Below, piece by piece: positions 577 to 59,089 of a stretch of DNA of 64,000 nt. Made by a program: the position numbers and the translations under genes. Location: positions 84,134,001 to 84,198,000 of the forward strand of contig NC_043002.1 in assembly GCF_006345805.1 (NCBI RefSeq), given 5' to 3'. Positions within the stretch are counted from its first letter, which is position 1. Every line of letters begins with the position of its first letter. The DNA is from Octopus sinensis (lineage: Eukaryota). The notes beneath the pieces are model-generated. The model was not told the origin of the DNA and did no database searches. It saw only the letters and a list, made by a program, of their open reading frames with translations.

Positions 577-701
577 CAGTTTCTTTATTGTCTGAGAAGT
601 AGATACTACTTGGATTAAACCATTTCTTCTTTAGAGTGTGCGATATAACATCAATTACCTGGGGAGCATGTGGTGTTGAAGCATTGTAATCCAAGTAAAT
701 T
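577..701 (-). CDS. SCLY: Internal exon of a selenocysteine lyase / class-V PLP (NifS-like) enzyme
   Basis: IYLDYNASTPHAPQVIDVISHTLKKKWFNPSSIY matches the SCLY/NFS1 N-terminal motif (VYMDYNATTP...WGNPSS). Acceptor ttctttctgtacag|A, donor ACTG|GTAAGT. The YNA.TP and W.NPSS residues favour SCLY over NFS1. Confidence 0.75.
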
Positions 702-13705: not shown

Positions 13706-13782
13706 ATCTTTCCATTCTGAATGATATCGTCAACATCCCTGGAATCCGGATCGAAAGCTGCGATGTTTAATACGGATCCCAT
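13706..13782 (-). CDS. Putative first coding exon of the SCLY-like gene (MGSVLNIAAFDPDSRDVDDIIQNGK)
   Basis: GCCATGG start context. Donor AAGAT|GTAAGT, phase 2, compatible with the acceptor at 701. CpG-richer non-repeat sequence around 13570-14350. The linkage across a 13-kb intron is inferred. Confidence 0.45.
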
Positions 13783-31025: not shown

Positions 31026-31092
31026 AAATTTTACAAAAACGATGCTGTCTATTTATTTTTGAGATGTCAGTGTAGATTAGAAAACAACTTAC

Positions 31093-31533
31093 ATTTTAGG
31101 TTGATCAGCATCTTCAATATATTCTACTGGTTCCCTCTGTGGTATTGTGTTATTGGACCATGGTCTAGGTGCAGAGTTTAGATTTGTGTACTCCTCATAC
31201 ATTTTGCATTCTTCACGGGGTTGGCTCATTAGTTTCATTTGGTTTTCCTTTGTTCGCCGGCCCTTTCGACTGGCTTCTTTTGACATGCCAAGAGTCAAAC
31301 ATTTTTGTAGCCTACAGTAGGCACAACGAGTCCTTGTGAACTTATTGATTATGCAATTTTTGCTAATGCACAAATAAACCATTTTCTTGCGTATGCTACG
31401 ACGGAAAAATCCTTTACAGCCTTCACAAATGAAGTGGCCATAATGTATACCAGATGCAAGATCTCCACAAACTTTACACGGAAAGTGACGTGGGTTACAT
31501 AAAAGCTTCTTCTTTTCATAGTTATTTGTGGTG
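31093..31533 (-). CDS. Coding exon 6, canonical NR1/RAR-like DBD14 (31284-31478)
   Basis: Acceptor ttcttttttccttttag|C (phase 2). [75 protein letters not shown]. Ends AAAAT|GTAAGT, which is either a donor or reads through to TAA at 31089. Confidence 0.9.
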
Positions 31534-34500
31534 CTAAAAGGAAAAAAGAAGAAAATAATAAAATTGTTGATACACATAATCATAGAGATAGTTTATTTGT
31601 TTTAATATCTGTTTTTTTTTTTCATGCTATGACTTTGACAGAAATGGATTTGGGAGCAGGATTTAATGGCTGGATGCTCCTCTTGTCACAAACCCTCACC
31701 TGTTATTCAGGAGAAAGGGATTTTTATATTTCACAGGTATTTGAAAGTGTTGAGCCATCAGTCACAATGTCAACAAGACATCAACACTGTTTCATTCAAA
31801 CAGTAAAAATTGAAATATCAACATTCAGGAACATCCACATAGACACACACATACATGTGTGTATATAAATATACACACATAATTTTATGTCAGTTTTCCC
31901 ATGCTAGCATGGGTTAGACAGTCTTTCTGACATTATCTTCATGTTGCCAACACTCAGTACATGATGTACCTATTTTAAAAACAAGGATACATACAGTAAA
32001 TATAGCCATAAAGTATGTTTGTTGAAATTTGATCATAAGAGTAGCAAAAATGAAGATAGTAGCATCAATGTTACTAACAGCATGAACTGGATGCTTTTTT
32101 AAGTGGCACCAGCACTGGCAGGGTCACCAAGTAATTTGCAAGACAAGGAATCTTTGAGTGGGGAAGGGGCATTGGAGGAAGTAATCTTGTATCAGATGAT
32201 GGAAGGTTAGAATGTGACAGAGAGACAGAAACAAAGGTCTTGCAGTAGAGGAGGTGCATGGTTACCCAGCCAGAGAAAGAGAGAGATGCTAAACTCTATA
32301 GATATATTCTGTAGTATTGCATAGTTTAAAGACATTAAAACATCTTACTTCTCTTCTTTCATCATTCCAACAATCAGACACTTCTTGAAACGGCAGTGAT
32401 GACACAATACTCGACTGGTTTTGTTCACAATGCAGTGGTTGTTGTACTTGCACTTGTAACTCTCGCTGTGGTTGTTAGTAATACTGAACTGGAAGAAATT
32501 ACGGCAGCTACGGCAAACCCACAGCCCACAATAAATCTCACTGGACACATCTGAACAAACAATGCAAGGAACTTTTGGATTTTCCTTCACCACATTCTGT
32601 GGATTTTCATCTGAGTTGCTGTAACAAAGAAAGGATAAAATTGTATAAATAGAACATAACATTAATGTGAAAGATATTAAATATGTTTTCTTCCATCCCT
32701 GTTTTTTTTAAGCCCAGTGATGTAAGTTAAATGAGAAATAACTTATACAACTCATACGCATGCCCACACACACACTTTGGGTAAGTGCTTTCTGCTATAG
32801 CATGGGCAGACCAAAGCCTTGAGTGAATTTGGTAGACAGAAACGGAAAGAAGTCCATTGTGTGTGTGTATATCTAGGCATACCTAGAATAATGATGCACT
32901 TTTATCAAATTGACTACTCGCATGAGACATCCCTTTGTATTATAAAAGCGGACTTGTTTATTAATTGAATATTTTTGTTGCACAATCACTGAGATGGTTG
33001 TCATATTTGCTAAAAATACCAGCCACACAGGCCTAGGCCTTAAATCATGCTCCACCAAATTTTTTTTTGTTTTTGGCATAATTGTATGAAGTTCTGTGTG
33101 TAGAATATAAATTTGCAAAAATTTTCTGAAAACTTGAGACAAATAAAAAAGTTATGAAAGGGTTATATGTTGTGCATAATTCTACGCTTCCATATCAAAA
33201 TACAAGTGCTATTTCCAGGATGTTGACAAAATGGGCAGTCACGCACAAAATGACAGCTTTGAAATTGTGTTTCTTGACTGAGTCAAAATGATTAAACTTT
33301 AAACCTCTATAACTTATAAAAACATTTTTCTGGAAGGAGTTGAATCTGATGGGTCCCCTTCAAAAACAGGAAGATACAGAGATTTTTCGTCTCTCCTAAA
33401 GCATAAAATTTCCTACCAGATACTAACTCTTCATTGCCTGGCACACCAGCAGCATTTAATGGCAAACAATATGAATGGTAGACTGAATGATGCGTTACAG
33501 TTAGTTATCAAGACTGTGAACAAATTGAAGTCCAGTCCCTTGTCTGATTGAATTTTCCGTCAATTCTGTCTGAGAAATGATGAAGACTATACTAAACTCT
33601 TATACCATACCAAAGTGTGGTGGCTGTCAAAAGGAAACTGTGTTTTACGCTTTGTTCAACTGTTTCATATAATCATATATTTCTATGAAGATACTACACT
33701 ATCCACTTCATTGATGGGTGCAAGGCGCCATATCTTTTTTCTTTGTGATATATTCTCAAAATTAAATGATTCAAATATGTTATTGCAAGGAAACAGAAAA
33801 ACTCTCGTTGATTGTAAATTATTTACTACTACCTTCATTTCAAAATTGGTGCTGTATAAGATTAACATTCCAAAACATCAATTCCGTCAATTTCCACAAC
33901 TTGACTCTTTGAGAGATGAATTGGTTGATGAGGATTTAACTACATATCACAACTATATACAATCATTGCATGATGACATTTCAAGATATTGCGCTGAATA
34001 TTCCAAATTGGTAGAACAAACCATTTGAGGTCAATGCAGTCAATTGTTCAGGAGGGATTGATAGAATTACAAAATGACAATGATGCCACAATGCGATATC
34101 ACCGTAATGGCAAAGAAGGTTTGTGGTACCAATCTGTGGAAACATATGATATTACTTTTTCTTGCCTTCCTTACCTCATACCGGGTTGAATCTGGTTTTA
34201 GTCATTTGGAACTTTACTTTTCCATAAAAGAATTGAACTGGATGTGACACAACGAAGAGACTTGTGACTAATGTTGACAAGTTTGAAACTGAATGTATCT
34301 GCATTAGCTGCATCATACCAGACACTTTTTAAGAATACATTAAAAAGTTGTATTCGTTTCCTTTATAATACAATCATTAATTATTTTTGCATTGGTAATT
34401 CTGATCAATGGTTCATTTGGGGAAAATAGAAATCAGTGTAAAAGAAAGTGCAAGTTTACCGAAGTTAGTCTGTTTGCATAATATAAATTTAACATTAGAA

Positions 34501-37500
34501 TTTTATTCACACTAGCAGCAAAACTAAGCCCACAATGAGGGATTATTTGTAAACAACAGCATGTTTAGTCCAAACGGCACTAACCAAGCAATGAGTCTAC
34601 AATATAGTGTGTGTGTCAAATGATACAGGGGGGGGGTTCTCCTAGTGTTAGGGGTATGGTTGTATCAGAGTTTTTTTGACATAGGTGGGCAGTGGAGCAA
34701 TTTTGGACCAATAAGTGGGCAATATCGCAATTTGATGCGAAAAGTTTGGGAAACATTGCTTTAATGTCTATTTTCCATGCTGACACTGTCTGGGCCATTC
34801 AACCAGAGCTGGCAAGCAGGAGAGCTGCACTTGGTTCCAGTCTGACTTAGCTTGGTTTCTATGGCTAGATGTCTTTTCTAACACCAATCGCTTTACAGTG
34901 TGTGCTGGATGCTTTTAACGTGGCACTGGTATGAGTACTTTTACATGATGTCAACACGAGTGCTTTTTATGAGGCACTGGCACAGGGCTCTTGCAAGCCA
35001 TGAAAAGTGGATGTTAAAGCAATTAGGATGATGATAAAAGTAGCATAGAAATTTTGAATTATCAATGGAATGGACAAACAAAAAACTTACTTGGTTTTAG
35101 ATTTATTGGTGCTATTAGTCTTTGTCTGCTGCTTCTTTAACTCTGGCATTTCTTTAGACAAATTCTCATCTAGTTTGCGTCGTCTTCCTCGTTTGCTCAA
35201 TTCCTTTGACATGCCAACCCTCAAACACTTTTGGTAGCGACAATAGGAACAATTCACTTGCGCACTACCGTATACATTACAATTTTTCGGGGCACACTGA
35301 TAGTTTTTAAAACTTTGTTGCTCACAACTCTTGTAGAAGAAAACTCGGCAATTGTGACAGGTCCAAACCCCATAATGAATTCCAGATGCTTCATATCCAC
35401 AGACTTTGCAATGGTTCTGTAAAAAGTGATTAATGCCAAAAATATAATATTATTGAAAAAATTACAATTTCTTAGTTTATTAAGTGGTTACTTACAACTC
35501 AAACTTAGTTACATTCAATATCACCAAAGTATCCAGGCAAGAGTGTCCTTATAGCACTTAATACAATTCTTACTAATGTTACAATGAACAATCTCAGGTG
35601 ATCCTACTTGGAAATGTTATAAATGTTATACAGCAGGAGTGGCTGTGTGGTAAGTAGCTTGTTTACCAACCACATGGTTCCGGGTTCAGTCCCACTGCGT
35701 GGCACCTTGGGCAAGTGTCTTCTGCTATAGCCTCGGGCTGACCGAGATTTGGTAGATGGAAACTGAAAGAAGCCTGTCGTATATATGTGTATATATGTGT
35801 GTGCATGTATGTTTGTGTTTGTCCCCCTAGCATTGCTTGACAACCGATGCTGGTGTGTTTACGTCCCCGTTACTTAGCGGTTCAGCAAAAGAGACCGATA
35901 GAATAAGTACTGGGCTTACAAAGAATAAGTCCCGGGGTCGAGTTGCTCGACTAAAGGCGGTGCTCCAGCATGGCCGCAGTCAAATGACTGAAACAAGTAA
36001 GTAAAAAAAAAAAAAATATGAATAACAGAAATTGCAATGAAAAGGTTGTATTTTTTACCTCTAATTCCAATACACAGCACAAATATATAAGAGCTACAAT
36101 AGATAATCTCCCTCAAGCTTAGAGGCTCTTGAAGATAAAGCTTATCTAAATTTTCAAGGTGTTTAAACTGAGTGTATAAGATTGCACCCCTCTGAACTGG
36201 ACATCTGTCTGTTGTAGGGTTAATCCTCAGGTGCCACTGATACTCTTGCTCAGTTGAGTGCTCTGGAGCAATATGAAATGAAGAGCCTTGCTCAAGGATA
36301 CAGTGCACAGCCCAACCCAAGAACCAAACCTCAAACCTAAAGATCACGAGCCTAACATTGTAACAACTGGATCATGTACCTTTATGTCCAAATATATGCG
36401 AATAAAGAGAAAATATACATTACCCTCGTAATGGATTCAATCTGTACATTGCTAGCAGACTCAACCATCTTTTGGCTATCAGTCTTATCTTTTAAAGGCT
36501 GGACATTATGCTTTACAATATTTTTGGCCATTCCAAGAGCAAGACATTTTCGATACCGGCAATAATCACAGCTCTTTTTGTTGTTTTTCGTAATTGAACA
36601 GTTTTTGCTATCACAAGAATATTTCCGGTTGATACTGTTCTTTTGACTTCGTTTAAAGAAAGATCGACAAGGAAAACATGTGAGTACACCTGCATGTACA
36701 GTAGAGGCCTCATCACCACACACTTTACAGAGTATGTTGCCACTATGCCGAGTGAATCCAAGAGACAGGTTGTCCAGGTCACTAGAAATATATAAAAAAA
36801 TAGTCAAGTATATTAAACATAGTAATACAAAAATCTTTTCAACAACAATCAAAATTAGGCATTATAATTAAAAGCATTGCATTTTTATTAACATCTTCAT
36901 GTTGGCTCACAGCTGTATAGTTATCTGTTTTTTTATAATTAGTTTTCATTTTCACCATTTTGTTATTTTAGATTGTGTCTAACTACCCCTAACTCCCAGG
37001 ATATATTTAAGCTATTTGTACCATTTATTTTCTCTCTCTCTCTCTCTTTTCTTTTGAAAGTAGTGGTTTTCTGATTGCAGCCCTCTCATGAAATCTGGCT
37101 TTGTGCAGCTCCCAGCAAACAGTTTTTGTGGAAACTGGGTTCTCGAGGTGGTCATTAAGTTCTGCAGTAATTTTGGGAGCTGTACTTTTGTGATCCTTTC
37201 TAACAAATTGCGTAGAAGTCCAACTGTCCCTATCTGAAAGTTTTGGTTTTCTTTCAGAGTTTTGTTTCGATGAGGAGGTTTTTCTCTCTTTCTCAAAACT
37301 GTCATTTCTTTCGAGACCTCTTCCACACACACATGCTCTCTTATACACATGCACGTGCACCTTCGTTTTGGGATCACCACTACTTTATTAACACCCCTTC
37401 TTCTTAATTCTCCTGTGTGACCTCTCTGGCATTCGCCATGATAGATCGCTAGTTACTACACATTCTTTAATTTCTCTCCTTGTCTCTGTGTTCCATTCTA

Positions 37501-37628
37501 TGGAAGAGCATAGGCTCGAAATGTTAAAGACCTTTTCACTTGCCAAGCGTTACACTAATACATCTGTTTGTTGTCTACATCACCTGTCTTCGTCCTTTGT
37601 TTTTTTGTGAATTCTCCCCCCCTATATA

Positions 37629-37660
<32 letters not shown>

Positions 37661-40600
37661 ATAATATTAGGGAGTATATCCAAACTTACAGGGAAATATA
37701 TATGTAGGTTTAGGTAGATATGTATATGTTTTCTGCTGGTAACTTTATGTGTGTGTGTGGGTATATACATGTGTATGTATGTATATGTGTATGTATATCT
37801 ATGTGTGTGTGTGTGTATGTATGGATGTATACATATGTATGTATTATGTGTATATATAGGGATGTAGACAGTGATATGCAACCCCATTACAAAACCAATA
37901 AATTGATTGATTGATTGATTATTTAATCAATCAATGGACCTAAATTTTTGAATATATTATATATTTTTTATAATTTAGACCTCAATAAACTAGAGTTGCC
38001 TCCCTTCATTCTTTTTATAAAACCACACATCTTAAATATAACATTGAAAGTAATTAAATGAATAGACGGATAAATATTTTAAAGGACTGAGTAAATGATG
38101 GTTATATTAATTAAGTGACTTAACACTATTACATAGAGTCTTGCATTTGAGGCATTTTGCCAGATAAAAATAGAATTTAAACATAATTTCAGGGATAAAT
38201 AGCAACAATTTAGTAATATGTAGGTATATATATATAAAAGAGAATATATAAGGATATATATTGAGTTGATTAATTAAAAGAGAATATATATTAAGTTGGT
38301 TCATTAATTTACTAACTAAATACTGTTGCAATTAATGCACTCTATCGGAGAATACATTTTAAACATAATTTTAGTGATAAACAACAAATTAGTGAAATAA
38401 CTTATATGGTCACTTTTGTTATTTTGTCCCTTATTTGAATTTGGTCCAAATAACTTCCAACATACATTTTTAACCATATATCACCCATATGATTTAATAA
38501 ATATATAAATGATGTCCCTACAGAATTCATGTTTTTCATCCAAATGATTTTGAAGACTGCGGAATAAATGATAATCTGGTGGGGTAATATCTGAAGAATA
38601 TAGTGGGTGGAGCATCGCTTCCCATTCAAACTACTCTAGCCTTAGTCTGGCATCCCATTCAATGAGGAGCCTTATACTCCCAGTCTTAGAAATTATAAGT
38701 TTTAAACAAAAGACAAGATTCATCCCAAACAGGTATGAAAATATTTAAGATGTTAGAAGACTATTACTTACCCATCAGACACAAGACTTTTATTCTGATT
38801 TGAAATTGGTTGGGTATTGTTTCCACTGTTGCTGTTCTTAGAATTTTGATTAACAGCATCTTGATTAGGAGTTGATAACAGTGACTGTGGCACTTCTGCT
38901 TGATCACTTGACTTTTCTTTCTGATGACGTAGTTTACGCTTAACCTTGTAGGACATACCAACACCCACGCATTTCTGGAACCAGCAGTAATAACAGCGAC
39001 TACGACTGGTACGACTGATTAAACAATCCTTGTTGAGGCATTTATATGCACGATGTAGTCTTTTGTCCAAACTGCGTCGGAAAAAGACACTGCAGTTCAA
39101 ACAAGATGCAATGCCATAATGAGAAACAAACGAGACATCCCCACAGACTTTACATAACTTAGCAACATCCTTGCTTAGATTAGTAGTCACTGATGGTGAT
39201 TCATTTGTTGTGTTCCTCATGTTGGAACTTAGGTCTTTGGTCTGAGATACTGTAGGACAAGTGGAACCCGATTTGCTTGATGTAACAGGCAGCATTTGTA
39301 CTTCTGAAGATGTGGTCATAGATAATCCTGAAAGCTTGTTAATAATCTCTGAATTATTACTAGGAGTTGGTATAGGATTAGTTTTGTCACAAACGTTGGA
39401 ACTGTTGGCATTGCAATCCTGTTCAGGTGCTGAGAGTCTGTTTGTAGCCATTAATGTTTGCTGCTTTTTCATTTGTAGAGTATCACTCATCCCAACAGAA
39501 AGACATTTTTGGTACCAGCAGAATCGACACCGGTTGGTAGTAGCTTTATTAATAAAACAGTTACCGTCTGCATGATCCTTTTCAGTAGGTATTCTCCCAT
39601 TTAGTACAGTTCGAAAGAAACACAAACAATTACGACATGTCTGTACTCCATACCGAACACCAATTGCAGTATCATCACAAACACTGCATATCAGTTCAGA
39701 ATGAGTTTGTGTCTGTCCCTGAGGTAAGGTAGGCTTAGGAGCAACTAACACAGATTTTACAGGTGAAGTGTGAAGTCTACTTTGAACAGCATCTACAGTG
39801 TTTGTAGGTTGTTTATTATTTGATAACTGTGGCTGCAAAGAAACTGTATTAGGTGTGCTGGTAGTATTAGTGTTTGCATTGGTCTGTAATGGTGTTGTGG
39901 TAATTACTGATACAGTTTGACTTCTAGGATTAAATGTACTAACTGTGCTGACTTCTCTTTCAACAGGAGAAACACTGCAAGCAACATCTGTAGTTGTACA
40001 AGTTGCACCAGAAACTATGCTGTTTGTGCTACTGATGGAAGTTGCTACAGATGCAAGGGATGTGCTTGCTACTTTACTTCTTTCAGCATTTGAAGAATCT
40101 GCAACAGTAGGCAATAGCTTACCACTCTTTACCTGGTGGATTCCTGAAGAGACAGATCGGTCAGTATTTGAAGTATAGCTCTCCAAGAATTGACCAGTTC
40201 CACTTTGGCTTTGATTTGTGGGAATTAACATTTTTGACATGCCAACAAGCAAGCACTTTTGAAACCAACAATAAGAACAACGTTCGTAGTTATCAGGTGT
40301 GACACAACAGTTTTTGTTATGGCACTTATATTTTTTGGTCGTTCGTGAGTCAGTACTCTGCTTAAAGAAAATAGTACATGACCAGCAGGTTTCTATGCCA
40401 AAGTGAATTCCTGATGCCAAGTCACCGCATACTTTACAGAAACATTCTTGACTGCTAGTAGAGTTTGGATTCTGGGAATTACCGACATCACTTTTGTTGT
40501 TATCACTCTGGTGTGGAACACTTTCAATAATTAAAGGTGAATCAGAATCATTATCAACAGCCATTGGTTCGGTTTCAGTGAGATTAGCTGTCCCAGTGCT

Positions 40601-43600
40601 ATTTAAATTACTATCTAAATCAATGCAAACAATAGATGATTGCTCACTGACTATCTTCTCTGTACTTGTCTCACGTAGCATCTTCTCTTGAGAAACGGAA
40701 GATCTGTTAGTGACTTTTTCTAAGTTCATTTCATTAGATTCTTCATCAACTGATATTCCAGTCTGTGTTGAACTGGAAGGCTTTGCTTTCAGATTTACTT
40801 CATCATCATCATTGTTTTCATCATTGTTCCCTTCTTTAATAACATCAGATGATATATCAATGCTATCAACTTGATCATCTTCAGTATTGGTGTCATTGTC
40901 AGTCATGACTGGATCACTATTGTTCACAGTGCTTTCATTATTTTGAATTGACTCTTTATGAAGTGCTGAAACTGCTGCTTCTGAACTTGTCTCAATCTGA
41001 TCTTCAGGAATAGAAACCTCATTTTCACTAGTCAAATCCTTCTGTTTGCTAACAGTTTCAGTTTCATTAGTTTGGGGTCTAAGTTTTGGTGGCCGTCCTC
41101 GTTTAGTGGTGCCTTTCATCATTCCTGCCTGTAGACACTTCTGTAGCCAACAATATCGACAGAATCGGCGTGTTACACTGTTGATTATGCATGACTTATT
41201 ACATACTTCATATTTACAGCCAATTTTGGAGTCAGTGCTTTGTGCAAAGAAACTACGGCAGCTTGAACATGAAATAATACCATAATGTAATCCATGAGAC
41301 ACATCTCCACAAACACTACACAAGCTAGTCCCAATGAAAATAGTATCAGTTTTGTTTCCAACTCTGCTTTCAGTCATGCTACTATCTTCTTTATTTCTGA
41401 CTTTATTTCTCTCGCTGAATTCTGCGACTATAGTAACAGAAGGGACAGACGAAATTTCAGTGGTGCTCTCTGACACAGTAGATGGTTGTTTACTGTTTTC
41501 TTTACAGATAGAATCTTGCTTACAGGTTGGTGTAACTTCAGTGCTAAGTAGTGTTGATTTTATCTTTCGTGGACGGCCTCGTTTACGCAGTGGCTTGGCT
41601 TGTGCTGTTTCCAAATCTACATCCTTATTTCTTAGGGGGATTTTCAAAGTAGTTTTGGTAAGAGTAGAAATAGACTTTGAAGTATTGTTCTGGGGATGAC
41701 GATTTTGTTTATGCATAGAAGTTGATGTCAAATTCTTTTTCAATGAAGTCTTTGAATTTACTTTTTGCTTGGCCATTTTCTTAGACAATTTCACAGTACT
41801 ATATGTTTTCTGTGATTTAGGCAAAGAATGTCGTAAACGACCATCATCATCATCATCATTAAGATTATCATCAACAAACTCATATTCTTTCAGTGCAGCT
41901 TGATGTGATGAGCTAGGAAGTGCACTTTTTGAAAGTGAAGGCTTTTTCTTAGCCTTCCCAATCATTTGAACTGACTTTTTGATTCGACTATGCATTTGAT
42001 TTGCAATATGTTTTGGAGAACAACATTTAATCATATAACGTAAAGAAAGAGATGGTACACCAACAGCTCTGCTTGTCTTCTTCTTTGACATATGAGCTGT
42101 TCTTTTCAGCAAAGTGAAAGATGTTTTCTCAGTTAGAGCTCGTGACCTGTGAGAAATATTTGGGTTGGTTGTCATCCTGGTGTAGTCAGTTCCAGCTTCT
42201 TTAGGATGGTTACTATCTGAAACAGAATCTTCATTATCAGAATTTCCAGCAAATTCAGAACTGGTCTCAGAAGGGTCTGGCACTACTATAGGATTAAGAG
42301 ACTGTTTATCGATGAAATGAGACAGTGCTCCAGGAATGATTTCTTTGCCAACAGGAGCCTCAGGTGAACAACAGTTGGAGTTTTGGATCATATCAACCAA
42401 AACTGAAGAATTTACAGAATTTCTTGAAGAACTTGGAATAATTTCTGTAATAACAGATTTATCAGTAAAATTTCGCAATGTCTCTAGAATAGTATTGTCC
42501 ACATTTTCCTCAGAATGTATTGCTCCAGTTGAATCAATAATTTCTACAGGTGTCACTCTATCAGCACTGCTTTCACCATCATCAACAGAATCACCAGACT
42601 TCTTTTGAACAATTTCAGTGTCTACAGAATTCCATAAAGGTTCAGGAATAACTTCAGTAACTACAGAGGGATCCACTGATGTACTAAGGCTTTCAGGTAA
42701 GATTCTCCGGAATGTTGGTGCTTCTTGTAATCCCAAACCCTGGTCAGACTCTGGCAAAGAAGTTTTTGCATTTGCAACTGGAATTTCAGTTGTGATATCA
42801 TTTGATGCCACTAGAGGAATGCTTTCAGAATTTGAATTCAAAGTAGTGCTTTTATCCATGTTGCTGACATACAGAAGAGAACCATCACTTTGGTCTTTTC
42901 TCTCCATTGTTACAGTAACATCTTCATTACATAAACTAGTATCCATGGCAGTGGACATAGATGAGTTATTGGAATCACAGCTAGGTTTTTGAGAAGGAAA
43001 CGACTCACTGATATCAACAGAGCATCCAGAATCACTAATTTGATTGTTATTATCTACAAATTCTGTATTTGAAGATTCTGGGGCCAAAGAAGATGTTGTG
43101 GTTGTTGGTTCACCTGAAGATGGCTGCGAAATTTTCAAATCCAAAAATGCTCTTGAACAGTTTTTATTACTTTTGGACACTGACTTGAAATCAGGAACAT
43201 CACAAACCTCCACATTTCCAATCTCTTCATGTATTTCTTCACTCATTTCATCAGTAAGGTCTTTAGCTAAAGGACTTTTATCATTAGGGAATACATTCTG
43301 AATAATTCCCATTTCATTTTCATTAATATGATGGTGATCACTATTGTCGTGGAACTTTTCATTTCTGTTTTGATCCTGTTGACCAGTTTTGGGAGTAGGT
43401 GTTGGTGATTGAACTGGAACGATTCGTTTCTCTTGCTTTGACATTCCAACAGCCAAACATTTTTGGTACCAGCAATATCTACAAACACCTCTATTTATTT
43501 TGTCAACATAACAGTTGCCATCTCGGCAGACATACTGACTGGAAATTTGCTTGTCTAAACTCTGGCGGAAGAAGACACTACATTTCAGACATGTCCACAC

Positions 43601-46600
43601 TCCATAGAGGACTCCTGGAGCTCTGTCTCCACATACTCTACATAACTTCTCAGAATCTGTTTCTTCAGAATGAGTAGCAGTTACAACAGAGCTACCATCC
43701 TCAATCATAGCAAAATCATTTGTTTCTGACTGTTTCTGTTTGACAAAATCAATATTTGAAGATTCCAATACAAGCTGTGGTTCAGGTTCTAGTTGTGGCA
43801 TTTTAGCATCCAAAGACAATGCATTTGAAGATTCCAGAGACTTATCACAAATTTTGACTCCTCGCTTCCTTTCTTTCTGAAGACTAAGAAGTTTTTTCCG
43901 TTCTTTCTCAATGCTTCTCTGGAGCATTAGAAGCTTCTCTTCCACATTATCTTTCTTCATTTGAAGCTCATTTAATTTTTGCTGAGCAGTTTCCCGCTCT
44001 CCATGCTCAAAATTACATCTGTCCATATCAGAGACTTTTTCTGACACATCCTGATCTTCACTTCGATCTAGGATTGGTTTGAAAACCACTTTTTTCACCT
44101 GTTTTTCTCCAGCTGCTGATGACACAAATGGCAGAGATTCAGAAACTGGTGTCATATCATCTGAGCTGTCGAAAATGTTCTGTGGAACTTCATTAGTTAC
44201 TTTTACCATCAAATGATCATTCATCGAAATTGAAGTAAAACTGTCTTTCACAGAATTGTTACGTTTTTCATTAGACTTTGTTTCCCAATCCAAACTAAAA
44301 AGCGATGGATCACGATTTTGATTTGAGTGCTCGGAGATGGAATCAATTCTGGTATTTTTAGAAGTCAAACAGGAGGGTAGAACATTACTGGTTTCATTGG
44401 TTTGTTTCAGATGACTGTCTTTTAGTAATAAACCACTTTCCTTTGTTTGATAATCATTACTGTTAAGGAGTACACGCCTAGTAGCTTTTGACGTACAGTC
44501 TTTCATTGTATCAGGTAACATCACAGACTGCTGCTGTTGCTGGTTTTGTTTCTTTAAAGCACTAACACGTTCTTTTTCCATTTTTAGACGTTCAAATTTC
44601 TTCTGGATCAATTCTATTTCTTCAGATGATTTAGTTAGAGATTCAAACATACTTTCCATCAAACTTGGTAGTTCACAAATTTGGTTGTCTGAAGTATTGT
44701 CCCCAAAGTATGGTTCAAGAACTTCACTGTCCATGTGAGATGGACTTGTTTTATCTTGAAGTATATTGTCCAAAACAGCACTGTATATGTCCACTGATTC
44801 TCTGAAAACTAGATTATCCAAAACAGGATCAGGAATTCGATTTTTTGATGCCTGGGTCTCCAAACTGGACGAATTTCTCAAAACATTTGTTTCTTTACTG
44901 AGCAAACCACATTCTACACACTTCTCATACCAACAATAGCTGCACCGATTTTTTGGCAGCAAATCACTATTGATAATAGAACAGCTTTGAGTCTGCTCAC
45001 ATACATACTTAGAGCATATTTTTGAATCAGCATTTTCTTTGCAGAAGGCCTTACAATCAGTACAAACTTTAGCACCACAATAGATCTCAGCAAAAGGTGC
45101 ACTACAGACAATGCACAATTCTTCGTTTTGAATGAGTGGAGTTATCACTGAAGAATATAGTGTATTTCCAGGATTTTTAACTTGATCCAAAGAGCTAACC
45201 ATGTGTACAGATGTTGTATTTGTGCTTGTAGAGTTACTGATGGCAGTTGTTAATTGTGCAGATGATATTGGTGTTAGAGGTAAGGAAAATGTAAAACGAT
45301 CACAGGTTGGCGTCAAGGCAAAAGTAAAACGGTCACAAGTCGGGGTCATTTTTGATATTTGGTCAGCCTGCATTCCAACAGCAAGGCATTTCTTGTACCA
45401 ACAAAATTCACAGTTTTCCCGGTTTGTTTTTGTAACCGAGCAATTTCGTCGTTTTGAACAGCTGAAACCAGCAGCAAAACCATCTTGTATGCACATCTGG
45501 AAAAAGATGCGGCAATCTGGACAAGTAAGCACTCCGTAATTAACAACAGAAGCCTGATCACCACACACAGTACAGATGTTCATATTTTGTGTAAAATGAG
45601 AAGGATCGATAAAAGTCTTGGTGGTGTTGTTAGTAGTAGTAGTAGTAGTAGAAGTAACAGTAGTAGTAGTAGTTCTACATGTACTGCTCTCAGTAGATTT
45701 CAACAAGTCCTCGTGCTTACATTTGTCAGATGTGGCACCTGAATCAGTCAATTTGGTACTATTCACTGCATTTACATCAGGTGCTTTATCGCAGGAGCCG
45801 ATAGCTGTTGAAATAGTAGATTTCTTCAGTCTGCTGCTGTTACTGTTTAAACCAGTATTACTACTACTATTACTAATGTTACCGTTATCATTTCTGCTAG
45901 GAATACTGACGTTGGTATTTTTTGCAAAATCTTCTTTTGGTGCTACAACTCTTTCATGAGTTGGTAATTTACACATTTTGTAATGTGATTCAGCACCAGA
46001 AGCAATCTTGATGCCATCTTTGTTACTGTCTGTGACTTTCTTTTTAGGTAGCACCACAATTTTCTTTGCCACTGTTTTTTGATGAACTTTTGCTGTCATA
46101 GTAGTGGGTGCTGAAAATGTGACTGTTGTTGATGCTGCAGTTCTCTTTAAAACTGATGGCAATGTCACAGCATTGGTCGGTTTCTGTGATACAAAAGTTG
46201 ATGACGACGACGACGATGATGATGATGACGGCAATGATGATAAAGTCGATGATGATGATAGAATTGATGATGGTGATGAGGAGGAGGATAAAACAGATGA
46301 TGATGACAATGATGGTGAGGTTAATGATGATGATGATGACTGTGATGATAATGATAATGAACGAGAAAATGAAACAGAAAGAGATTGGAATGAAGTAGTT
46401 GATGATGAGACAGAAGTATTACTGGTACTCCTTTTTGAAGATGAGTTAAGTTGTGTATTTGAAGAGTTACCAGTATTCTGTGTGCTACTTGCAGAATGAC
46501 TTACCACTTTGAAACGTTTGTTAGGGATGCTGTTAATGTCGCTCTGATGTTCAGAAGGTTTGGCTAGGTTTTGATCTATAGTTTCGAGTTTTCTTTTTTT

Positions 46601-49600
46601 CACAGTAATCACATTAGTTTTTGATGCTGTTGAAGAGACACATCTACCGCTGCTACTGTTGTTGTTATCGTTTAGAGATTTATTACCAATATTGTTGTTG
46701 CTACTGTTTAGAAGTTTGCTACTAACATTGTTGTTGTTCTTGTTGCTACCGATGACCTTCACACAGTCTTTGCTATCTTTGATACACTTTTTGTTATTGT
46801 TTGCTGTTACAGATCCTTCGCTTTCTTTCTGCTCATCTTTTACTTTAATGCCATAAACAAGTTTTACCGTTTTTTGTGTTGATGAAACAACTTTGCAGCT
46901 GTCATTATCTTCCATTGGATTTCCCTCTTTCTCTTTCTGCATACCGCTAAGCAGACACTTTTCATACCAACAATACTCACAGCTACTTCGCCGAAAACGA
47001 TTAATCTTGCATTTTTTAAACTTGCAAAAATAGCCCTTGTAAAAATCATCAAGAATACTCATTTTAAAGAAAACTTCACATTCTGGACAGGCCAAAATGC
47101 CATAATGTTTCTTGAAAGCACGATCTCCACAAACTTTACATAAGTTGAGATCTTTTTTAGGTGGTGGTACTTTCTGAGACTCTGTAGTTTGTTGTGGGAC
47201 TGTGGCCTTGCATGTCTCTTTATTTATATGTTTATGCAGTGATGGCATTTTCGATAATGAGTTGGTTGCTTTTTCAGTTTTCATTTGCTGTTGTTGTTTG
47301 TTCTCTACTTTTATCACAGTAACAGTTTCACCAATTTCTGGTTTATCACTTGTCATTCCAGCTCTGCAACATTTCTGGTACCAACAGTACTCACACTTTC
47401 CTCGGTTTCTCTTGGTAATTTCATGCCCTTTATGTTTGCAGTGGTAACCATCAGCAAAGCTGTCTTGTATGCTCAGTCGATAGAAAAGCACACAGTCTGG
47501 GCAAGTGAGTACTCCATAATGGATAGTAGAAGCTGTATCTCCACATACTTGACACACACATTCCTCGGTAGTCAGGACAATGCCAGGATGTTTCTCGGGA
47601 TGTGTTTTCCTGCAACATAAATAGAAATGAATTAAGTAAAAATTAACTGAATGCCAACATTGAAATAATACAGATAGACACATCCTCATCATCCGTTTAG
47701 CATTTACTTTTTTAAGCTTGCATAGGTTGGACAGAGTTTATTGAGGAAGATTTTCTATAGTAAGATGCTCTTCTTGTCACCAACTCTCAGCTGTTTCCAA
47801 GCAAGGCAATATTTCCTCATAGCCACACATGTTCTCATAGAATATTGGAAGTGAATACCACTGCTTGTATGACAGTGGCAGTCATTTACAACTATCACAT
47901 ACACATAAATATACATACATACATATATACACACACACATCTATATATATACATATATATATACACATACACACACATCTATATATATATATACACATAC
48001 ATAGACACACACACACACACATATATATATATACATATACTACACACATATGCAATGGGCTTCTTTTACTTTTCTCTCTCACAAGGGCTTTGGTCATCCT
48101 GAGGCTATAACAGAAGACACTTGTCCGAGGTACCACACAGTGGGACTGAACCCAGAGCCATATGGTCAGGAAGCAAACTTTTTACCACACACAAATATAT
48201 CTGTTTACTATATGTACTAGTGCAATTACTAGAGTCACTGGCTTAGCCTTTCATGACCAAAGATAGCTATCAATAGGTTGCTAGCCTAATTAACATTTTT
48301 GTAACGAAGAAATAATGGTAGTAATAAGCATCTCTCTCTCTCTCGCAAGAAATGCAGTAAAGCAACTATAATTTGAGATCAAAGTTTCAATGGCAGACTA
48401 GGTTACTTTGTAAGTCTCTCACTCACTCACTCTCAATCCTACTATATGACACTTTAGGCAAATGTTTTAAATCATATTCTCAAGTTAGCCAATATCTTTT
48501 AAGTGGGAATTGATAAGTGGAAACTGAGCAGAAGCCCATTATATATGTAGAAGAGGATTATACTTATTGGTAAAATCAAGCAGGAAGTCTGAATCAGACT
48601 GGAGTTTGGTGCAGCCTTCCAGGTTGCCAGTCCTGGTCAAACCATCCAACCCATGCCAGCATGGACAACAGATGATGATGATAATGATGGCTAGAAATGT
48701 GTCAAAAAAGTACCTTAAGCAGTCAGTAAATGCATAAAAATAAAATAAGCACCAGATTATTATAAACATTCAGATCGTTGTCAGCGTCACCTCACAGGTA
48801 CTTGTGCCGGTGACACATGAACAAAACAGCCGAGCGGAGTCGTTGCCAGTGCTGCTGGACTGACTCTTGTGCAGGTGGCATGTAAAAAACACCATTTTCG
48901 AGCGTGGCCACTGCCAGTACTGCCAGACTGGCCCTCATTCTGGTGGCACTTTAAAAGCACCCACTACACTCTCGGAGTGGTTGGCATTAGGAAGGGCATC
49001 CAGCTGTAGAAACTCTACCAGATCAGATTGGAGCCTGGTGCAGCCATCTGGTTCGCCAGTCCTCAGTCAAATCGTCCAACCCATGCTAGCATGGAAAGTG
49101 GACGTTAAACGATGATGATGATGATGATGATATGGGGAGTACTGCAGCATAGCTATGCTCCAAGGACTAAAACCAATCAAAGTATAAAAGAATATATTTA
49201 CAACTACTTTCCTGTAGTAACATGCACTGAATAGGTTCATTTTAAAACAGCCAGTTTCTACTCAGTCTTTCATCGTTTCTGTGTGAGGCACAGCATTCTG
49301 AGATCAGTTCTCACCATGTCTTCCTTCCTCTCCTGTGGACTCCTTCCACCAGCACTTGTTTGACACTTTTTCACCCAACATGCATTCTTCATATGCATCA
49401 CTCATCTGTACTATCAGTGAGGTCCACACCTCTAATGCTGAACTTTTATAGCTCAGCACAGCTCGTGTCATATCATTCGTCCATACCAATATCACACATC
49501 TAGCTATCAAAGATATAATATATATATCATCATCATCGTTTAACATCCATTTTCCATGCTGGCATGGGTTGGACGGTTCAACCGGGGTCTGGGAAGCCAG

Positions 49601-55600: not shown

Positions 55601-58509
55601 TTTATTATTATTATTATCATGTAGTTTTGGGTTTTATCCCACTGTTTAGCACCTTCGGAAAATGTCTTCTACTGTACCTTTAGGTCAACCAATGTTGTGA
55701 GTAGAACTAGTAAACAGAAACTGTATGAGAGCTCATCATATATACATCATTCTTGTTATCATCGTCATCATCATTTTTATGTCTACTTTTCCATGCTTGC
55801 ATAGGTCAGATAAGACTTTGCTGAAACAGAATTTTGCCAGACCAAATGCATTTCCTCCCCTATTCTAATCAACAACTAACAATCTGGACATGAATTTGTT
55901 AAGGACTACAAACTAATGACACCGTTTGTATGAAATAATGACATCTGTGTCCAGTACTCACATGTCAAGACATGCCAGTACGATGAGACACGCTTTAGTA
56001 GTGGACTGTAAACAAAGAACAGCTGACATCACTGAATTGCAAATCCGATTAATTAGTTTAAATGTTATAAGTTCACAACCATGAAGTCTCAAGTTCAAAC
56101 TCACAGCAGAGCATTTTGGGAAGCTTTTTTTTTTGCCATAGCGTCGGGCTAACCCAAGCCTTGTGAGTAAGAGTGGGTATTCAAGAACAGAGCAGAAGAC
56201 CATTAGATTGATCGTTCCTGTAATTACATTGAGGATACACGGATCTGTAGAATACTCAGCCACTTACATGCTAAATCAAGGCGCTGGTAGTTCAATTGAT
56301 TGAACAACTAGATACGTATCATTGAAATCAACGGTGATCCAGTGTTTTACATGCTAATAGCAACTACAACTTAATATAACTATGACTGAATGCTCAAGTC
56401 AGGTTTAACTAAATGAACTTCAATGTAGATCTCTGCTGAGGCCTTTGAATAAGCATGTACTTCTTATTGTTCAACCATGAAGCTACCCTGACCTGGCAGG
56501 CCTATGATCAAAAACACATCTGTCGTACAATCTTATCGTTTCAGAGAATATGTAGGACCTATATTGTCTAAAGTGTCACGGTATGGTGTGATTTGAAAAG
56601 GGATTCACTCGATGACACTTTGATATTATAGATGCTATTATAGGATCGTTATAGTAGAGAATATTGTTGTTTAATACTAGGTCATCTCCGACAACACAGA
56701 CCTATGATTAAAGACATTCTAGCTGTGGCATCCCACATATTTTATATATGAAAGACTACATTGTCTAAGTGTATTCTTTAAGACGGTAGAGTGTGATTTG
56801 CGGGAGATCTAACTGCTATTTCTAGCGAGCCCTATGTGTGTGTGTATGTATATATATATCATTTAGTTGTAAACTTAAAACGAGTATCCTATTAATGTGA
56901 AATAGAAATTTGGGGAATGTTGGGTGTAATAAATCTGAGTGCTATCCGTGGGAAAAGAAGGAGAAAATAAGCACCTTTGAGTACCATAACTCATGGTGGC
57001 AATATATGTGTGTATGTATTAGTGAAATTAAAATCAGTTTTTGATATATGATGAAATTAAATGGTCAAAGCATCCTTTAATTTCCTCAGTAATGCAAGTA
57101 AGTATATTTTGGCCTTAGTTGTTACTTAATCCCGGATCATTGCAGAAAAATAGATTTGTGGTTAAAAAGTAATCCAGTCGAGACTATCTCATCTTTTTGG
57201 AGATGTATAGCAATACATTTTCTAACATACTATATCCCTATTTATGACGGTAGCATGTGGAAACTTGGCTGCTAATTCGAATAGGCCGAACGACCACGTT
57301 GTCTTGTTGTCTAGGCAATATTTCTCTCATTAGTTTACTGCTATAATTGTTGTAATAAAGGAATTTTGGGTGTGTACATATGTCTGCGTGTCTGTATATG
57401 TATGTATGCGGGTGTTTAAAGAGGGATGCAGAGTAAAAATTACATTTAAAGGCTTACTTTTGTGATTCCTTTGAGGAAACAGGATTATTGGTAATCTCTC
57501 TCGTAACCGAACTTTTCGTCTGATTGGAAACAGACGTTTTTGTTTGAGGTTGAACTGCGGTAGTTTTTGTTATCCCTTGAGTTCGAGCGATTGGTTTTAA
57601 TTGTTTCACTGATTTCTGTTGTTGATTAAAAACTTTTAACGACTTCCCTTGTGCGAGTTGCAAAGAGGCTACTCCGGATGATACTGTAGACACCGACGGC
57701 CCATTTCCTTGGATTGAGCTTTTAGTAGTGTGAGAATTATCCATTTGAGTCGATCCTGCGAGTTGCTTTTGCATTGTAGATAGTTTCGGTTTTGATTGAG
57801 AGATAGCCGTTTTCTCGGAAGAGTCTGAACGAACGGGCTGATATTGCTGGCGTTGTGTCTGTTTATTCTTGGTTGCCACATCTACACTTGAACTTTCATT
57901 TGACGAGGCAGATAAATTTGGATTCTTGGATTCCTTTTCTGACGAACATGAATCGTTTTTGTTCCGAATTATATCATCACTGGGATCTTTGTTGTTATTG
58001 TTGGTATTCGGAGGTCTGTCTTTCTGATGTTTAGATTGGTTAACATCCGCGATTTCCAAAGCTTCATTGAGTCCAAAAGAGATGCATTTGAGATACCAAC
58101 AAGCACGGCATTTATTTACAATATCTGTTTTGATAACACATAATCCAGAAACTGGTGATTTCGAAGTCAACAAATTGGAATTCCTCAATGATATACGTCT
58201 GTTAATCTGACTCTGAGTAATACAGACATAAGTTAAGTGTGCATCTCCTAAGGTACTATGCTGGTAAAAATTCCTACATGCGGAACAAAAACTTTTTGTC
58301 TGAATCTTAACATCTGTAGGTCTATTTATGTTATTTGTCGACTTACTGTCAATATACTGCTCCGCCGCCTGTGCCCCACACACAAAACACGGGGCTGTTG
58401 CTGCCGTGGCGGCCAAAACTCCATCATCATCATCTTTTTTTAGCCCATCCTTCCGATTAAAATCCTGTGTTGTGGTTCTTTTGTGTTTCTGCGGGGACTT
58501 AAAGTCCAT
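31093..58509 (-). CDS. Spliced gene model: giant protein (>=3,761 aa) with 14 nuclear-receptor-type C4 zinc-finger DBDs, no LBD seen; 3' end unresolved
   Basis: Six exons joined by hand, each with a GT donor, AG acceptor and matching phase (2,2,0,2,2). Each exon carries one or more C-X2-C-X13-C-X2-C...C-X3-5-C-X9-C-X2-C-X4-C...GM motifs (loops expanded in DBD1 and DBD5). Confidence 0.85.
32349..32618 (-). CDS. Coding exon 5, DBD13 (32363-32566)
   Basis: Acceptor cctttctttgttacag|C, donor GAGAA|GTAAGA, both phase 2. [25 protein letters not shown]...CKYNNHC...[14 protein letters not shown]. Confidence 0.88.
33427..34758 (+). mobile_element. hAT (Charlie/Buster-type) transposon remnant in intron 4
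   Basis: [10 protein letters not shown]...[19 protein letters not shown] transposase motifs with stops. Charlie-like 3' TIR AAAAGTTTGGGAAACATTG ends at 34758. Confidence 0.8.
35091..35416 (-). CDS. Coding exon 4, DBD12 (35210-35410); this reading frame is absent from the ORF track
   Basis: Hand translation: [82 protein letters not shown]. Acceptor atcactttttacag|AAC (phase 0), donor ACCAA|GTAAGT (phase 2). Confidence 0.88.
36424..36781 (-). CDS. Coding exon 3, DBD11 (36529-36729)
   Basis: Acceptor tttttatatatttctag|T (phase 2), donor ACGAGG|GTAATG (phase 0). [28 protein letters not shown]...CDSKNC...[14 protein letters not shown]. Confidence 0.88.
37040..37300 (-). mobile_element. Tc1-like transposase N-terminal remnant (intron 2)
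   Basis: RKPKLSDRD...[29 protein letters not shown]...[19 protein letters not shown]. Confidence 0.8.
38480..38660 (-). mobile_element. mariner transposase C-terminal remnant
   Basis: [28 protein letters not shown] resembles the mariner WEVLPHPPYSPDLAPSDYHLF motif; in-frame stop upstream. Confidence 0.75.
38772..47609 (-). CDS. Giant coding exon 2 (8,838 bp, 2,946 codons) with nine NR-type DBDs (DBD2-10)
   Basis: Lies within the 2,974-aa ORF. Acceptor ctatttatgttgcag|G, donor GATGG|GTAAGT. DBDs at 47354-47554, 46940-47140, 45371-45574, 44903-45115, 43442-43642, 41120-41320, 40238-40438, 39488-39688, 38954-39154. Confidence 0.93.
50570..50955 (+). mobile_element. RTE-clade LINE reverse transcriptase fragment
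   Basis: [22 protein letters not shown]...LRKLG...[16 protein letters not shown]...[14 protein letters not shown], degraded. Confidence 0.85.
51600..53520 (+). mobile_element. Internally deleted RTE-clade LINE (AP endonuclease plus C-terminal region)
   Basis: VGSWNVGSL...VCCMQEARW endonuclease motif; [14 protein letters not shown]; [12 protein letters not shown]; WYGHALRR; GRPKETLR. Many frameshifts. Confidence 0.85.
57458..58509 (-). CDS. Coding exon 1 of multi-DBD gene (350 codons + 2 nt), contains DBD1 with two loop insertions
   Basis: ATG at 58509; the ORF-track start at 58512 is GTG and an in-frame TAG lies at 58542-58540. CFVC-X30-CSAC-X17-C-X27-C-X9-CRACWYLKC at 58069-58389. Donor CAAAA|GTAAGC, phase 2, matches the phase-2 acceptor at 47609. 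Confidence 0.8.
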
Positions 58510-59089
58510 CACAAGGAAAGTAGAAGTCTTCGTGGCACACTAAAAATACACAACAAAACAACGTCCGACATAATTGATCCGCCAGCTTACTTACTGCTGC
58601 GACACCTAGCGGCTACACAAGAGAAAATAACTAGCGAGATATTCGCACGACTTCCTAGTAAGGGAGATAACCACAGTCAAGTCCTGATTTGCACGATCAG
58701 TAGCGAGAAAACATTGCACTATTCATTTAACAGGATAAATTATTTCTCCTAAATATTTTTTGTTTGTTTCAGTTTATTGGACAGCGGCCATGCTGAGTAC
58801 CGCTTTGAAGGGTTTTACTCAAACGAATTGCCCCAGTACATATTCGATTGGTTTCTTTTTGCCAAATAGCTAGATTAAGGGAACGTAAACAAACCAATAC
58901 TGGTAATGGGGGACAATCACAACACAAACATTTTATAATATGTATGTATGTTCTCTTCTGTTTTTAGTTATTTAAATTCTTTCTCTGAGAAAGGAGCTGG
59001 TTTCTAAGAAAGATACAAAGCTCCATCGTTGGAAAATAGATAACGACTTGAGAAAAGTCTGGCCTATTTTTACTGTTACACTTAAAGAT

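Follow-up and report, generated by a model that had tools for sequence, protein, structure and literature searches.

A coleoid cephalopod gene predicted to encode fourteen nuclear-receptor-type zinc-finger modules joined to selenocysteine lyase

How often can the DNA-binding domain (DBD) of nuclear receptors (NRs) be repeated within one gene, and what takes the place of the ligand-binding domain (LBD)? In textbooks, the NR DBD is a once-per-protein domain, present twice in the NRs with two DBDs (2DBD-NRs) and always partnered with an LBD. The question is raised by a stretch of 64,000 nucleotides from the genome of Octopus sinensis (hereafter the window; G000:C6:84134001-84198000 of a genome of 2.72 Gb in 13,516 contigs), in which the original prediction, made from the letters alone, saw a single gene with 14 NR-type DBDs. 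According to the analysis presented here, the window probably covers most of one conserved coleoid-cephalopod gene, whose protein of about 4,182 amino acids carries 14 zinc-finger modules, has no LBD, is fused to selenocysteine lyase (SCLY), and would act as a multivalent binder of DNA or chromatin.

Gene model and zinc-finger modules

Six coding (CDS) exons (E1 to E6) are located on the minus strand of the window between positions 31093 and 58509. All exon borders are of the GT-AG type, the phases are compatible, and the exons sum up to 11,285 nt, that is, 3,761 codons plus two nucleotides. This is exactly the structure of the RefSeq/Gnomon model LOC115213281 of O. sinensis (XP_029638073.2, "uncharacterized", labeled P0006 here; 4,182 amino acids), which aligned to the window without mismatch. 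The six phase-compatible exons and the minimum of 3,761 amino acids had thus been predicted correctly. The extent of the gene had been predicted only in part, because the frame is not closed at position 31093 but continues into a complete SCLY domain. The novelty was likewise only partial: the architecture is undescribed, but the sequence was already public as the model named above. A search of 5.8 billion proteins returned a single cluster, which includes XP_029638073.2, two O. vulgaris models, and two SCLY-only models of O. bimaculoides. In UniProt, the 4,182-amino acid protein carries the name 'Selenocysteine lyase', and in other genomes the gene is annotated in fragments. The exons are as follows (a slash marks the exon border).

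57458..58509, minus strand: exon 1 (CDS), with the ATG at 58509, the degenerate DBD1, a Ser/Thr/Gln-rich tail, and the donor AA/GTAAGC in phase 2; residues 1-351 of P0006 map exactly
38772..47609, minus strand: exon 2, the giant exon (8.8 kb coding), with DBD2-DBD10 and long low-complexity linkers; nine zf-C4 stretches, 464.9 bits
36424..36781, minus strand: exon 3, with DBD11; acceptor and phase conserved in Argonauta and in the ERZ contig (see below)
35091..35416, minus strand: exon 4, with DBD12 and a basic C-terminal extension (KRGRRRK)
32349..32618, minus strand: exon 5, with DBD13
31093..31533, minus strand: exon 6, with the canonical DBD14, a conserved tail, and the donor AT/GTAAGT in phase 2

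Exon 2 is contained in a stop-free minus-strand frame of 2,989 codons (38768-47737); the other exons correspond to the shorter frames 57454-58539, 36382-36861, 35087-35449, 32345-32707, and 31089-31592. NR-type double zinc fingers were detected in the long frame and in all five shorter ones by a six-frame pattern scan and Pfam. The G+C content is 37%, yet frames of about 3,000 codons remain open. The N-terminus and the first finger encoded by exon 1 are kept in O. bimaculoides (P0017) and in the cuttlefish Acanthosepion pharaonis (P0128). A single gene instead of tandem genes, as originally proposed, is supported because one exon holds nine DBDs, three species have the splice phases and donors in common, and an RNA contig links DBD12, DBD13, and DBD14.

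The Pfam zf-C4 profile (PF00105) matched the full model in 14 stretches with 728 bits in total (E 9.5e-225), distributed over the exons E1-E6 as 1+9+1+1+1+1. This is the arrangement that had been read from the sequence. In exon-by-exon scoring, 13 modules reached 32.3-99.5 bits (cut-off 21.1) and are clear cases, whereas DBD1, with 20.7 bits, is borderline.

58069..58389, minus strand: DBD1, degenerate, 107 amino acids; eight of eight Cys, insertions of about 17 and about 21 residues in the loops of both fingers, CRACWYLKC; 20.7 bits
47354..47554, minus strand: DBD2, 64.6 bits; zinc ligand 6 is His, conserved in decapodiforms
46940..47140, minus strand: DBD3, 66.8 bits
45371..45574, minus strand: DBD4, 73.6 bits
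44903..45115, minus strand: DBD5, 32.3 bits, the lowest among the clear modules; net charge 0, additional loop residues
43442..43642, minus strand: DBD6, 76.9 bits; of the four species compared, only Argonauta differs in the helix (by one substitution)
41120..41320, minus strand: DBD7, 69.2 bits; directly followed by the AT-hook-like KRGRPPK
40238..40438, minus strand: DBD8, 67.7 bits
39488..39688, minus strand: DBD9, 64.6 bits; His as zinc ligand 5 in each of the four species compared
38954..39154, minus strand: DBD10, 73.0 bits; net charge +9
36529..36729, minus strand: DBD11, 82.4 bits; net charge +10
35210..35410, minus strand: DBD12, 70.6 bits
32363..32566, minus strand: DBD13, 68.9 bits; 23 amino acids upstream of DBD14
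31284..31478, minus strand: DBD14, 99.5 bits; canonical P-box EGCKG and FFRR, nearest to the DBD of RAR, net charge +11

Successive DBDs are separated by 222, 71, 455, 85, 420, 707, 227, 183, 111, 78, 37, 57, and 23 amino acids. DBD6, the one module that was modeled with AlphaFold, obtained a pLDDT of 90.2, and Foldseek superimposed this model on the DBDs of RXR, RAR, TR, and GR with TM scores of 0.93-0.97 (rmsd 0.6-1.0 Å). The nearest solved structure was RXR for DBD6 (62 bits) and RAR-alpha for DBD14 (90 bits). An LBD (PF00104) was not found at E ≤ 1 across the 4,182-amino acid model. DBD14 was also considered as the start of a separate, LBD-bearing receptor; this was rejected, since PF00104 was unmatched and long frames are absent from positions 700-31000.

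Orthologues, recognition helices, and linkers

Orthologous modules, whose search in other cephalopods had been suggested originally, were found for DBD2-14 in Argonauta hians and in the decapodiform-like ENA assembly ERZ21867824 (hereafter the ERZ contig), and for DBD2-10 in the cuttlefish. A maximum-likelihood tree was built from 40 DBDs of O. sinensis, Argonauta, and the ERZ contig. In it, the modules grouped by position and not by species; DBD2-14 each formed an orthogroup, most of them well supported. The cuttlefish modules were assigned to their positions by order and sequence. Argonauta, the ERZ contig, and the cuttlefish all follow the exon plan of Octopus. The open frame of the giant exon exceeds 3,288 codons in Argonauta and comprises 3,223 in the cuttlefish, and the donor of this exon (GAT NG/GTAAG, phase 2) and the acceptor of the DBD11 exon keep their phase in three species. 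Exon 1 was found in the cuttlefish record; in the ERZ contig, 10 kb of sequence preceding the giant exon did not contain it. Because orthologous modules occur in octopods and in decapodiform-type genomes, the array is older than the split of Octopodiformes and Decapodiformes. The proposed lineage specificity agrees with the searches made, in which only cephalopods appeared. When the octopus genome was searched with DBD10 as a single query, 11 of the 12 best matches were DBD10 itself and its neighbors, which is consistent with intragenic duplication and with the absence of a paralogous array.

Decapodiform-type genomes contain an additional degenerate module between DBD3 and DBD4 (L012:11156-11360, CWSMKWFQVGQ; L017:23371-23570, CWYLKWRQVGH) that Octopus does not have; the number of modules is therefore not fixed across coleoids. 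In the ERZ contig (ctg120624l, L012:11736-11845), the giant exon is shifted in frame within a run of poly-Ser that separates DBD4 from DBD5, probably by an indel of the assembly, because the cuttlefish orthologue is uninterrupted. Tandem, nearly identical NR-DBD-like units were observed on three unplaced octopus scaffolds (C12463:54000-60500, C8699:3000-11000, and C725:2000-10000; L001, L002, and L010, respectively); on C12463 they recur about every 1,662 bp. Both fingers of a unit are separated by an in-frame stop in every case; the units could be satellite-like amplified pseudogenes or contain a tiny intron.

The identity to Octopus was 0.71 for the DBDs and 0.49 for the linkers in Argonauta, and 0.66 and 0.28, respectively, in the ERZ contig. 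At the seven variable positions of the recognition helix, identity was 0.64 between orthologues and 0.19 between paralogues. This pattern fits the earlier suggestion that the NR fold serves as a repeat unit in the manner of C2H2 arrays. The helices of DBD3, 6, 8, 10, and 14 are nearly invariant, and that of DBD14 does not differ at all among the three species compared. It is also the only canonical helix (EGCKG/FFRR); the basic pair is retained in DBD10 and DBD11, and the other helices have diverged (the P-box of DBD13, for example, is RSCRN). In DBD1-10, the motif C-x2-C-W is present where canonical receptors carry Arg, which is retained in DBD11-14. The D-box of most modules, including DBD14, has four residues (C-X4-C) instead of five. 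The net charge of 13 of the 14 modules is between +3 and +11, compared with +8/+9 in RAR/RXR.

Four elements stand out in the linkers.

41561..41590, minus strand: AT-hook-like motif RKRGRPRK (residues about 2358-2367), conserved in Argonauta and the ERZ contig
41081..41110, minus strand: AT-hook-like motif KRGRPPK (residues about 2518-2527) directly after DBD7, conserved in other cephalopods
42260..42754, minus strand: best-conserved linker island (residues 1970-2134, 165 amino acids), 76% mean column identity over three species
43856..44686, minus strand: region with two conserved segments that are rich in K/E/L and resemble coiled coils (residues 1326-1371 and 1553-1602, judged by eye) and a conserved motif at 1471-1516

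Judged by sequence, both AT-hook-like motifs have the R-G-R-P core with basic flanks by which AT-hooks are recognized. The 165-amino acid island contains four copies of the motif [RE][IV][IL]P..L..[SF][VI][DN], which are almost identical in three species. AlphaFold gave no confident fold for it (pLDDT 49), and it is therefore probably a set of docking motifs. A poly-Ser stretch of 107 amino acids in O. sinensis (window about 46184-46504, P0006 residues 720-826) is missing from the O. vulgaris model CAI9724068.1, which reflects either a genuine indel or its annotation as an intron in O. vulgaris. In A. hians (L011:5700-9800), DBD10 is flanked by very large lineage-specific low-complexity expansions (SPVTSPVH..., TDVAS...), throughout which the frame is open. 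Intron 1 contains a purine-rich segment on the plus strand (52600-53320; GC skew of 0.49 over 52-54 kb) that resembles a decayed retrotransposon open reading frame.

The alternative that survives best is that the modules no longer bind DNA and that the array is a zinc-stabilized scaffold for interactions with proteins or RNA, in which the NR fold serves as a structural bead; we consider this possible, but rather unlikely. The non-canonical P-boxes of 13 of the 14 modules, with acidic or hydrophobic residues at the base-contact sites in DBD2-4, would fit a scaffold, as would the Trp found in DBD1-10 behind the last Cys pair, where Arg is otherwise conserved, and the D-box shortened in most modules. 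The strongly conserved short motifs in the linkers are typical of protein docking. DNA is indicated by the fully canonical DBD14 that has not changed in the species compared, by the basic net charge of most modules, which is found in true DBDs as well, and by the two conserved RGRP motifs together with the basic C-terminal extensions. The module-specific helices conserved among orthologues are equally compatible with sequence-specific recognition.

Splicing to selenocysteine lyase

The reading frame passes beyond position 31093 via the phase-2 donor of exon 6, which is joined to SCLY exon 2 about 30 kb downstream, resulting in the total length of 4,182 amino acids. The remaining SCLY exons are located beyond the start of the window (G000:C6:84114538-84127162). 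Two features of this region lie in the window.

577..701, minus strand: SCLY exon 2, accepts the splice from exon 6 in frame; encodes IIYLDYNASTPHAPQ..., with which the class-V aminotransferase fold begins
13706..13782, minus strand: alternative first exon of SCLY itself, within the 30-kb intron; MGSVLNIAAFDPDSRDVDDIIQNGK, 25 codons plus 2 nt, GTAAGT donor

The aminotransferase domain Aminotran_5 (PF00266) covers residues 3763-4158 (151.9 bits). The C-terminal 420 amino acids are clearly orthologous to SCLY and matched the rat enzyme (3A9X) with 411 bits; exon 2 is exactly where homology to the rat and human enzymes (human: 3GZC) sets in. The sequence motifs of the lysine binding pyridoxal phosphate (PLP; GHKFYGPRIG) and of the catalytic Cys (SVGAACHS) are preserved. 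SCLY is a single-copy gene in the octopus genome.

The arrangement was also found in other cephalopods. In A. hians (L011), SCLY exon 2 lies 20 kb downstream of the exons of DBD11-14, with a homologous SCLY first exon of equal length and phase in between (L011:31271-31347). In the ERZ contig (L012-L015), SCLY exon 2 is located 17.1 kb behind the DBD14 exon on the same strand. All three species end the DBD14 exon with a phase-2 GTAAG donor, although the surrounding sequence and even the peptide at the C-terminus have diverged. Three annotations predict the fusion: that of O. sinensis, that of Argonauta, in which the model GAB1611135.1 (950 amino acids) comprises DBD11-14 and SCLY, and that of the cuttlefish, in which a 2,152-amino acid model with zf-C4 and Aminotran_5 directly follows the 5' fragment. 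The size of the cuttlefish model is consistent with the remainder of the giant exon plus DBD11-14 and SCLY.

Transcript data point in the same direction. The Logan contig SRR27666080_82463 (L016; 2,578 nt, from a cephalopod other than Octopus) has a single uninterrupted frame, open from the 5' end, which encodes the second half of DBD12, DBD13, DBD14, and the complete SCLY, followed by the stop and a 3' untranslated region of 376 nt. Its segments align to separate ERZ exons 2-17 kb apart, and the switch from DBD14 to SCLY is located exactly at the genomic donor and acceptor. The contig is therefore derived from spliced RNA. SCLY-only transcripts with their own first exon are also present (P0170, a Logan contig of 2,958 nt), and the same first exon is used by the SCLY-only model of O. 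bimaculoides (P0008, 446 amino acids). We conclude that the locus yields both a stand-alone SCLY and a fusion of the DBD array with SCLY.

Two adjacent genes were considered as an alternative: the gene of the array would end at or just after exon 6, SCLY would be separate, and the fusion would be a low-abundance read-through product promoted by annotation. The first exon of SCLY has its own ATG and is conserved in Octopus and Argonauta, SCLY-only models or transcripts exist (P0007/P0008, P0169/P0170), the intron spans 30 kb, and an unspliced exon 6 would reach a stop one codon further on (...DADQPKM-stop). This stop, however, is the TAA inside the phase-2 donor GTAAGT, and it is the whole donor that is conserved in three species while its flanks diverge. 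An alternative terminal exon is not known, synteny, strand, and phase have been maintained since the octopod-decapod split, and the junction is present in the RNA contig. Two separate genes thus appear improbable, and even then the gene with 14 DBDs would stand.

Still less probable, to the point of being negligible, is an artefact of annotation or assembly, or a decaying locus, in which NR0-like DBD-only genes or pseudogene fragments were wrongly chained: the stop-containing units on unplaced scaffolds and the degenerate DBD1 and DBD5 might suggest it, but frames of 2,989, >3,288, and 3,223 codons are open in three genera at 37% G+C, the modules are orthologous one to one, splice phases are conserved, and spliced RNA exists. 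The same frames, about 3,000 codons long and uninterrupted in each of these genera, led us to reject chance or a pseudogene as well.

Several points weigh against one fused, DNA-binding gene product. For O. sinensis, the gene model is a prediction; the contig of spliced RNA originates from another cephalopod and covers DBD12 to SCLY only. The links from exon 1 to exon 2 and from the giant exon to DBD11 are supported by gene models and the conservation of splice signals rather than by reads; a word-index protein search with the end of the giant exon and DBD11-13 for transcripts bridging these junctions gave no match at E ≤ 1e-40, a threshold that, like the length window, was probably too strict. 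The Argonauta and cuttlefish annotations may not be independent of the O. sinensis RefSeq proteins. SCLY has a first exon of its own that is conserved, and transcripts with SCLY alone exist (P0008, P0170); the fusion could therefore be a minor product of read-through. On the protein side, 13 of the 14 recognition helices do not have the canonical set of base-contacting Glu, Lys, and Arg residues, and the phosphate-contacting Arg is replaced by Trp in 9-10 modules; judged from these residues, DNA binding by most modules may have been lost.

Relation to known proteins and proposed function

The 2DBD-NRs (NR7) are defined by two DBDs that are 17-22 amino acids apart, one LBD, the P-box combinations EACKK-EGCKG or LPCKS-EGCKK, and a C-X5-C D-box (Wu & LoVerde; PMC1810520, PMC10497141). 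The octopus protein resembles them in having more than one NR-type DBD per polypeptide, and 2DBD-NRs occur in molluscs, too. Its last DBD has EGCKG followed by FFRR, as does the second DBD of 2DBD-NRA, and the spacer of 23 amino acids between DBD13 and DBD14 is close to the spacing in 2DBD-NRs. In contrast to these receptors, it has 14 modules, spacers of up to 707 amino acids, an enzyme at the C-terminus, mostly C-X4-C D-boxes, and neither an LBD nor the EACKK or LPCKS P-box of a first DBD. The octopus protein is not a 2DBD-NR, but it may have a common ancestor with them, because the terminal EGCKG-FFRR helix and the 23-amino acid spacer are suggestive. When each module was compared by best hit with 291 DBDs taken from profile hits, no consistent affinity to the first or second DBD of 2DBD-NRs was observed. 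A word search of the survey of 2DBD-NRs (PMC10497141) gave no match to 'octopus' or 'cephalopod', and its mollusc tables contain bivalves and gastropods only.

Proteins of the NR0A/knirps type, which are further defined by a kni-box, have an NR DBD and no LBD, as has the octopus protein, but a single DBD instead of 14; the octopus protein is not of this type. With the C2H2 poly-zinc-finger proteins it shares the array of small zinc modules, internal duplication, and helices that differ between paralogues and are conserved between orthologues. The folds are unrelated, since the octopus modules are double treble-clef C4 folds of about 67 amino acids. In addition, C2H2 fingers are connected by linkers of 7 amino acids, whereas the octopus modules are tens to hundreds of disordered residues apart, so that a contiguous read-out of DNA is unlikely. 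The SCLY models listed from Haliotis, Mytilus, Pecten, fishes, and birds contain only PF00266 and no N-terminal DNA-binding extension.

A profile built from the 13 clear modules was searched against 1.84 billion representative proteins, and the best 150 of 10,677 hits were inspected for their number of DBDs; multi-domain proteins rank high in this list, as scores are additive over domains. Among these 150, the highest number outside the octopus gene family was six. The proposed uniqueness is therefore maintained for the number 14, which is far above the next highest, but not for multiple DBDs as such, because predicted proteins with 3-6 zf-C4 domains exist in Caenorhabditis brenneri (CAL2035663.1, five DBDs and an LBD), the mite Dinothrombium, and the stick insect Bacillus rossius. 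These proteins are not orthologous to the octopus gene, do not have the Trp signature, and several possess a normal LBD. In the literature searched, NR proteins with more than two DBDs and fusions of NR fingers to SCLY are undescribed, in accordance with the original statement that no described protein with 14 DBDs was known.

Two further groups were noticed. P0012, P0014, P0016, and P0023 (UniParc and Logan contigs of 2.7 kb) have 3-5 NR DBDs followed by one LBD, a '5DBD-NR' type absent from the papers searched; the 2.7-kb contigs with 4-5 DBDs and an LBD are probably transcripts. P0012 produced only generic DBD-level matches in the octopus genome and has no counterpart there. P0040, P0078, P0136, and P0138 (ENA contigs of 2-13 kb) form a separate LBD-less family with 4-5 divergent NR-type fingers, several of them followed by 'Y[ST].EEI..IL'. 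This family may be an independent invention of a protein with multiple NR fingers.

The favored reading of one fused gene implies a single transcription unit with two alternative 5' ends and common SCLY exons. The array would have grown by internal duplication of one NR1/RAR-like DBD before the octopod-decapod split, after which each module would have kept its own helix. The long protein may be a multivalent nuclear binder of DNA or chromatin whose modules are strung on disordered linkers. Receptors with the P-box EGCKG bind AGGTCA-type half-sites by the established P-box rules, for which reason DBD14, with its EGCKG/FFRR helix and basic C-terminal extension, would be expected to dock on such sites. 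Further DNA contacts might be supplied by the AT-hooks and the basic modules DBD3, 10, and 11. The diverged modules may have other specificities for DNA, RNA, or protein, since ligands of RNA or protein are conceivable where the canonical Glu/Lys/Arg contacts are lost and Arg is exchanged for Trp. The SCLY domain, which has the fold of a homodimeric PLP enzyme with intact catalytic residues, would dimerize the protein in place of an LBD and possibly add a catalytic or sensing activity. A more specific role, in which SCLY replaces the LBD as a module for dimerization and small-molecule sensing, or in which the array tethers a selenide-producing enzyme to chromatin sites, is a speculative idea that we rate as quite doubtful. 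If true, coleoids would own a 'receptor' responsive to selenium or amino acids that works on a principle unknown in other animals.

What is new here is the recognition of the architecture, the depth of its conservation, and the enzyme fusion, whereas the sequence itself was already public, uncharacterized or misnamed. The label 'Selenocysteine lyase' for the giant protein, or its division into fragments, calls for caution among annotators. Should the fusion with SCLY turn out to be the main product, it would be a rare conserved chimera of transcription factor and enzyme and a clean case in which a giant regulatory protein has its 3' exons in common with a housekeeping enzyme. The locus presents the NR fold as a repeated module, kept in 14 copies since before the octopod-decapod split and joined to a metabolic enzyme instead of an LBD. 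If the modules bind DNA, it would be a natural system for combining NR-type fingers, analogous to C2H2 arrays, and would represent a new lineage-restricted class of regulators beside the expanded zinc-finger repertoires of cephalopods.

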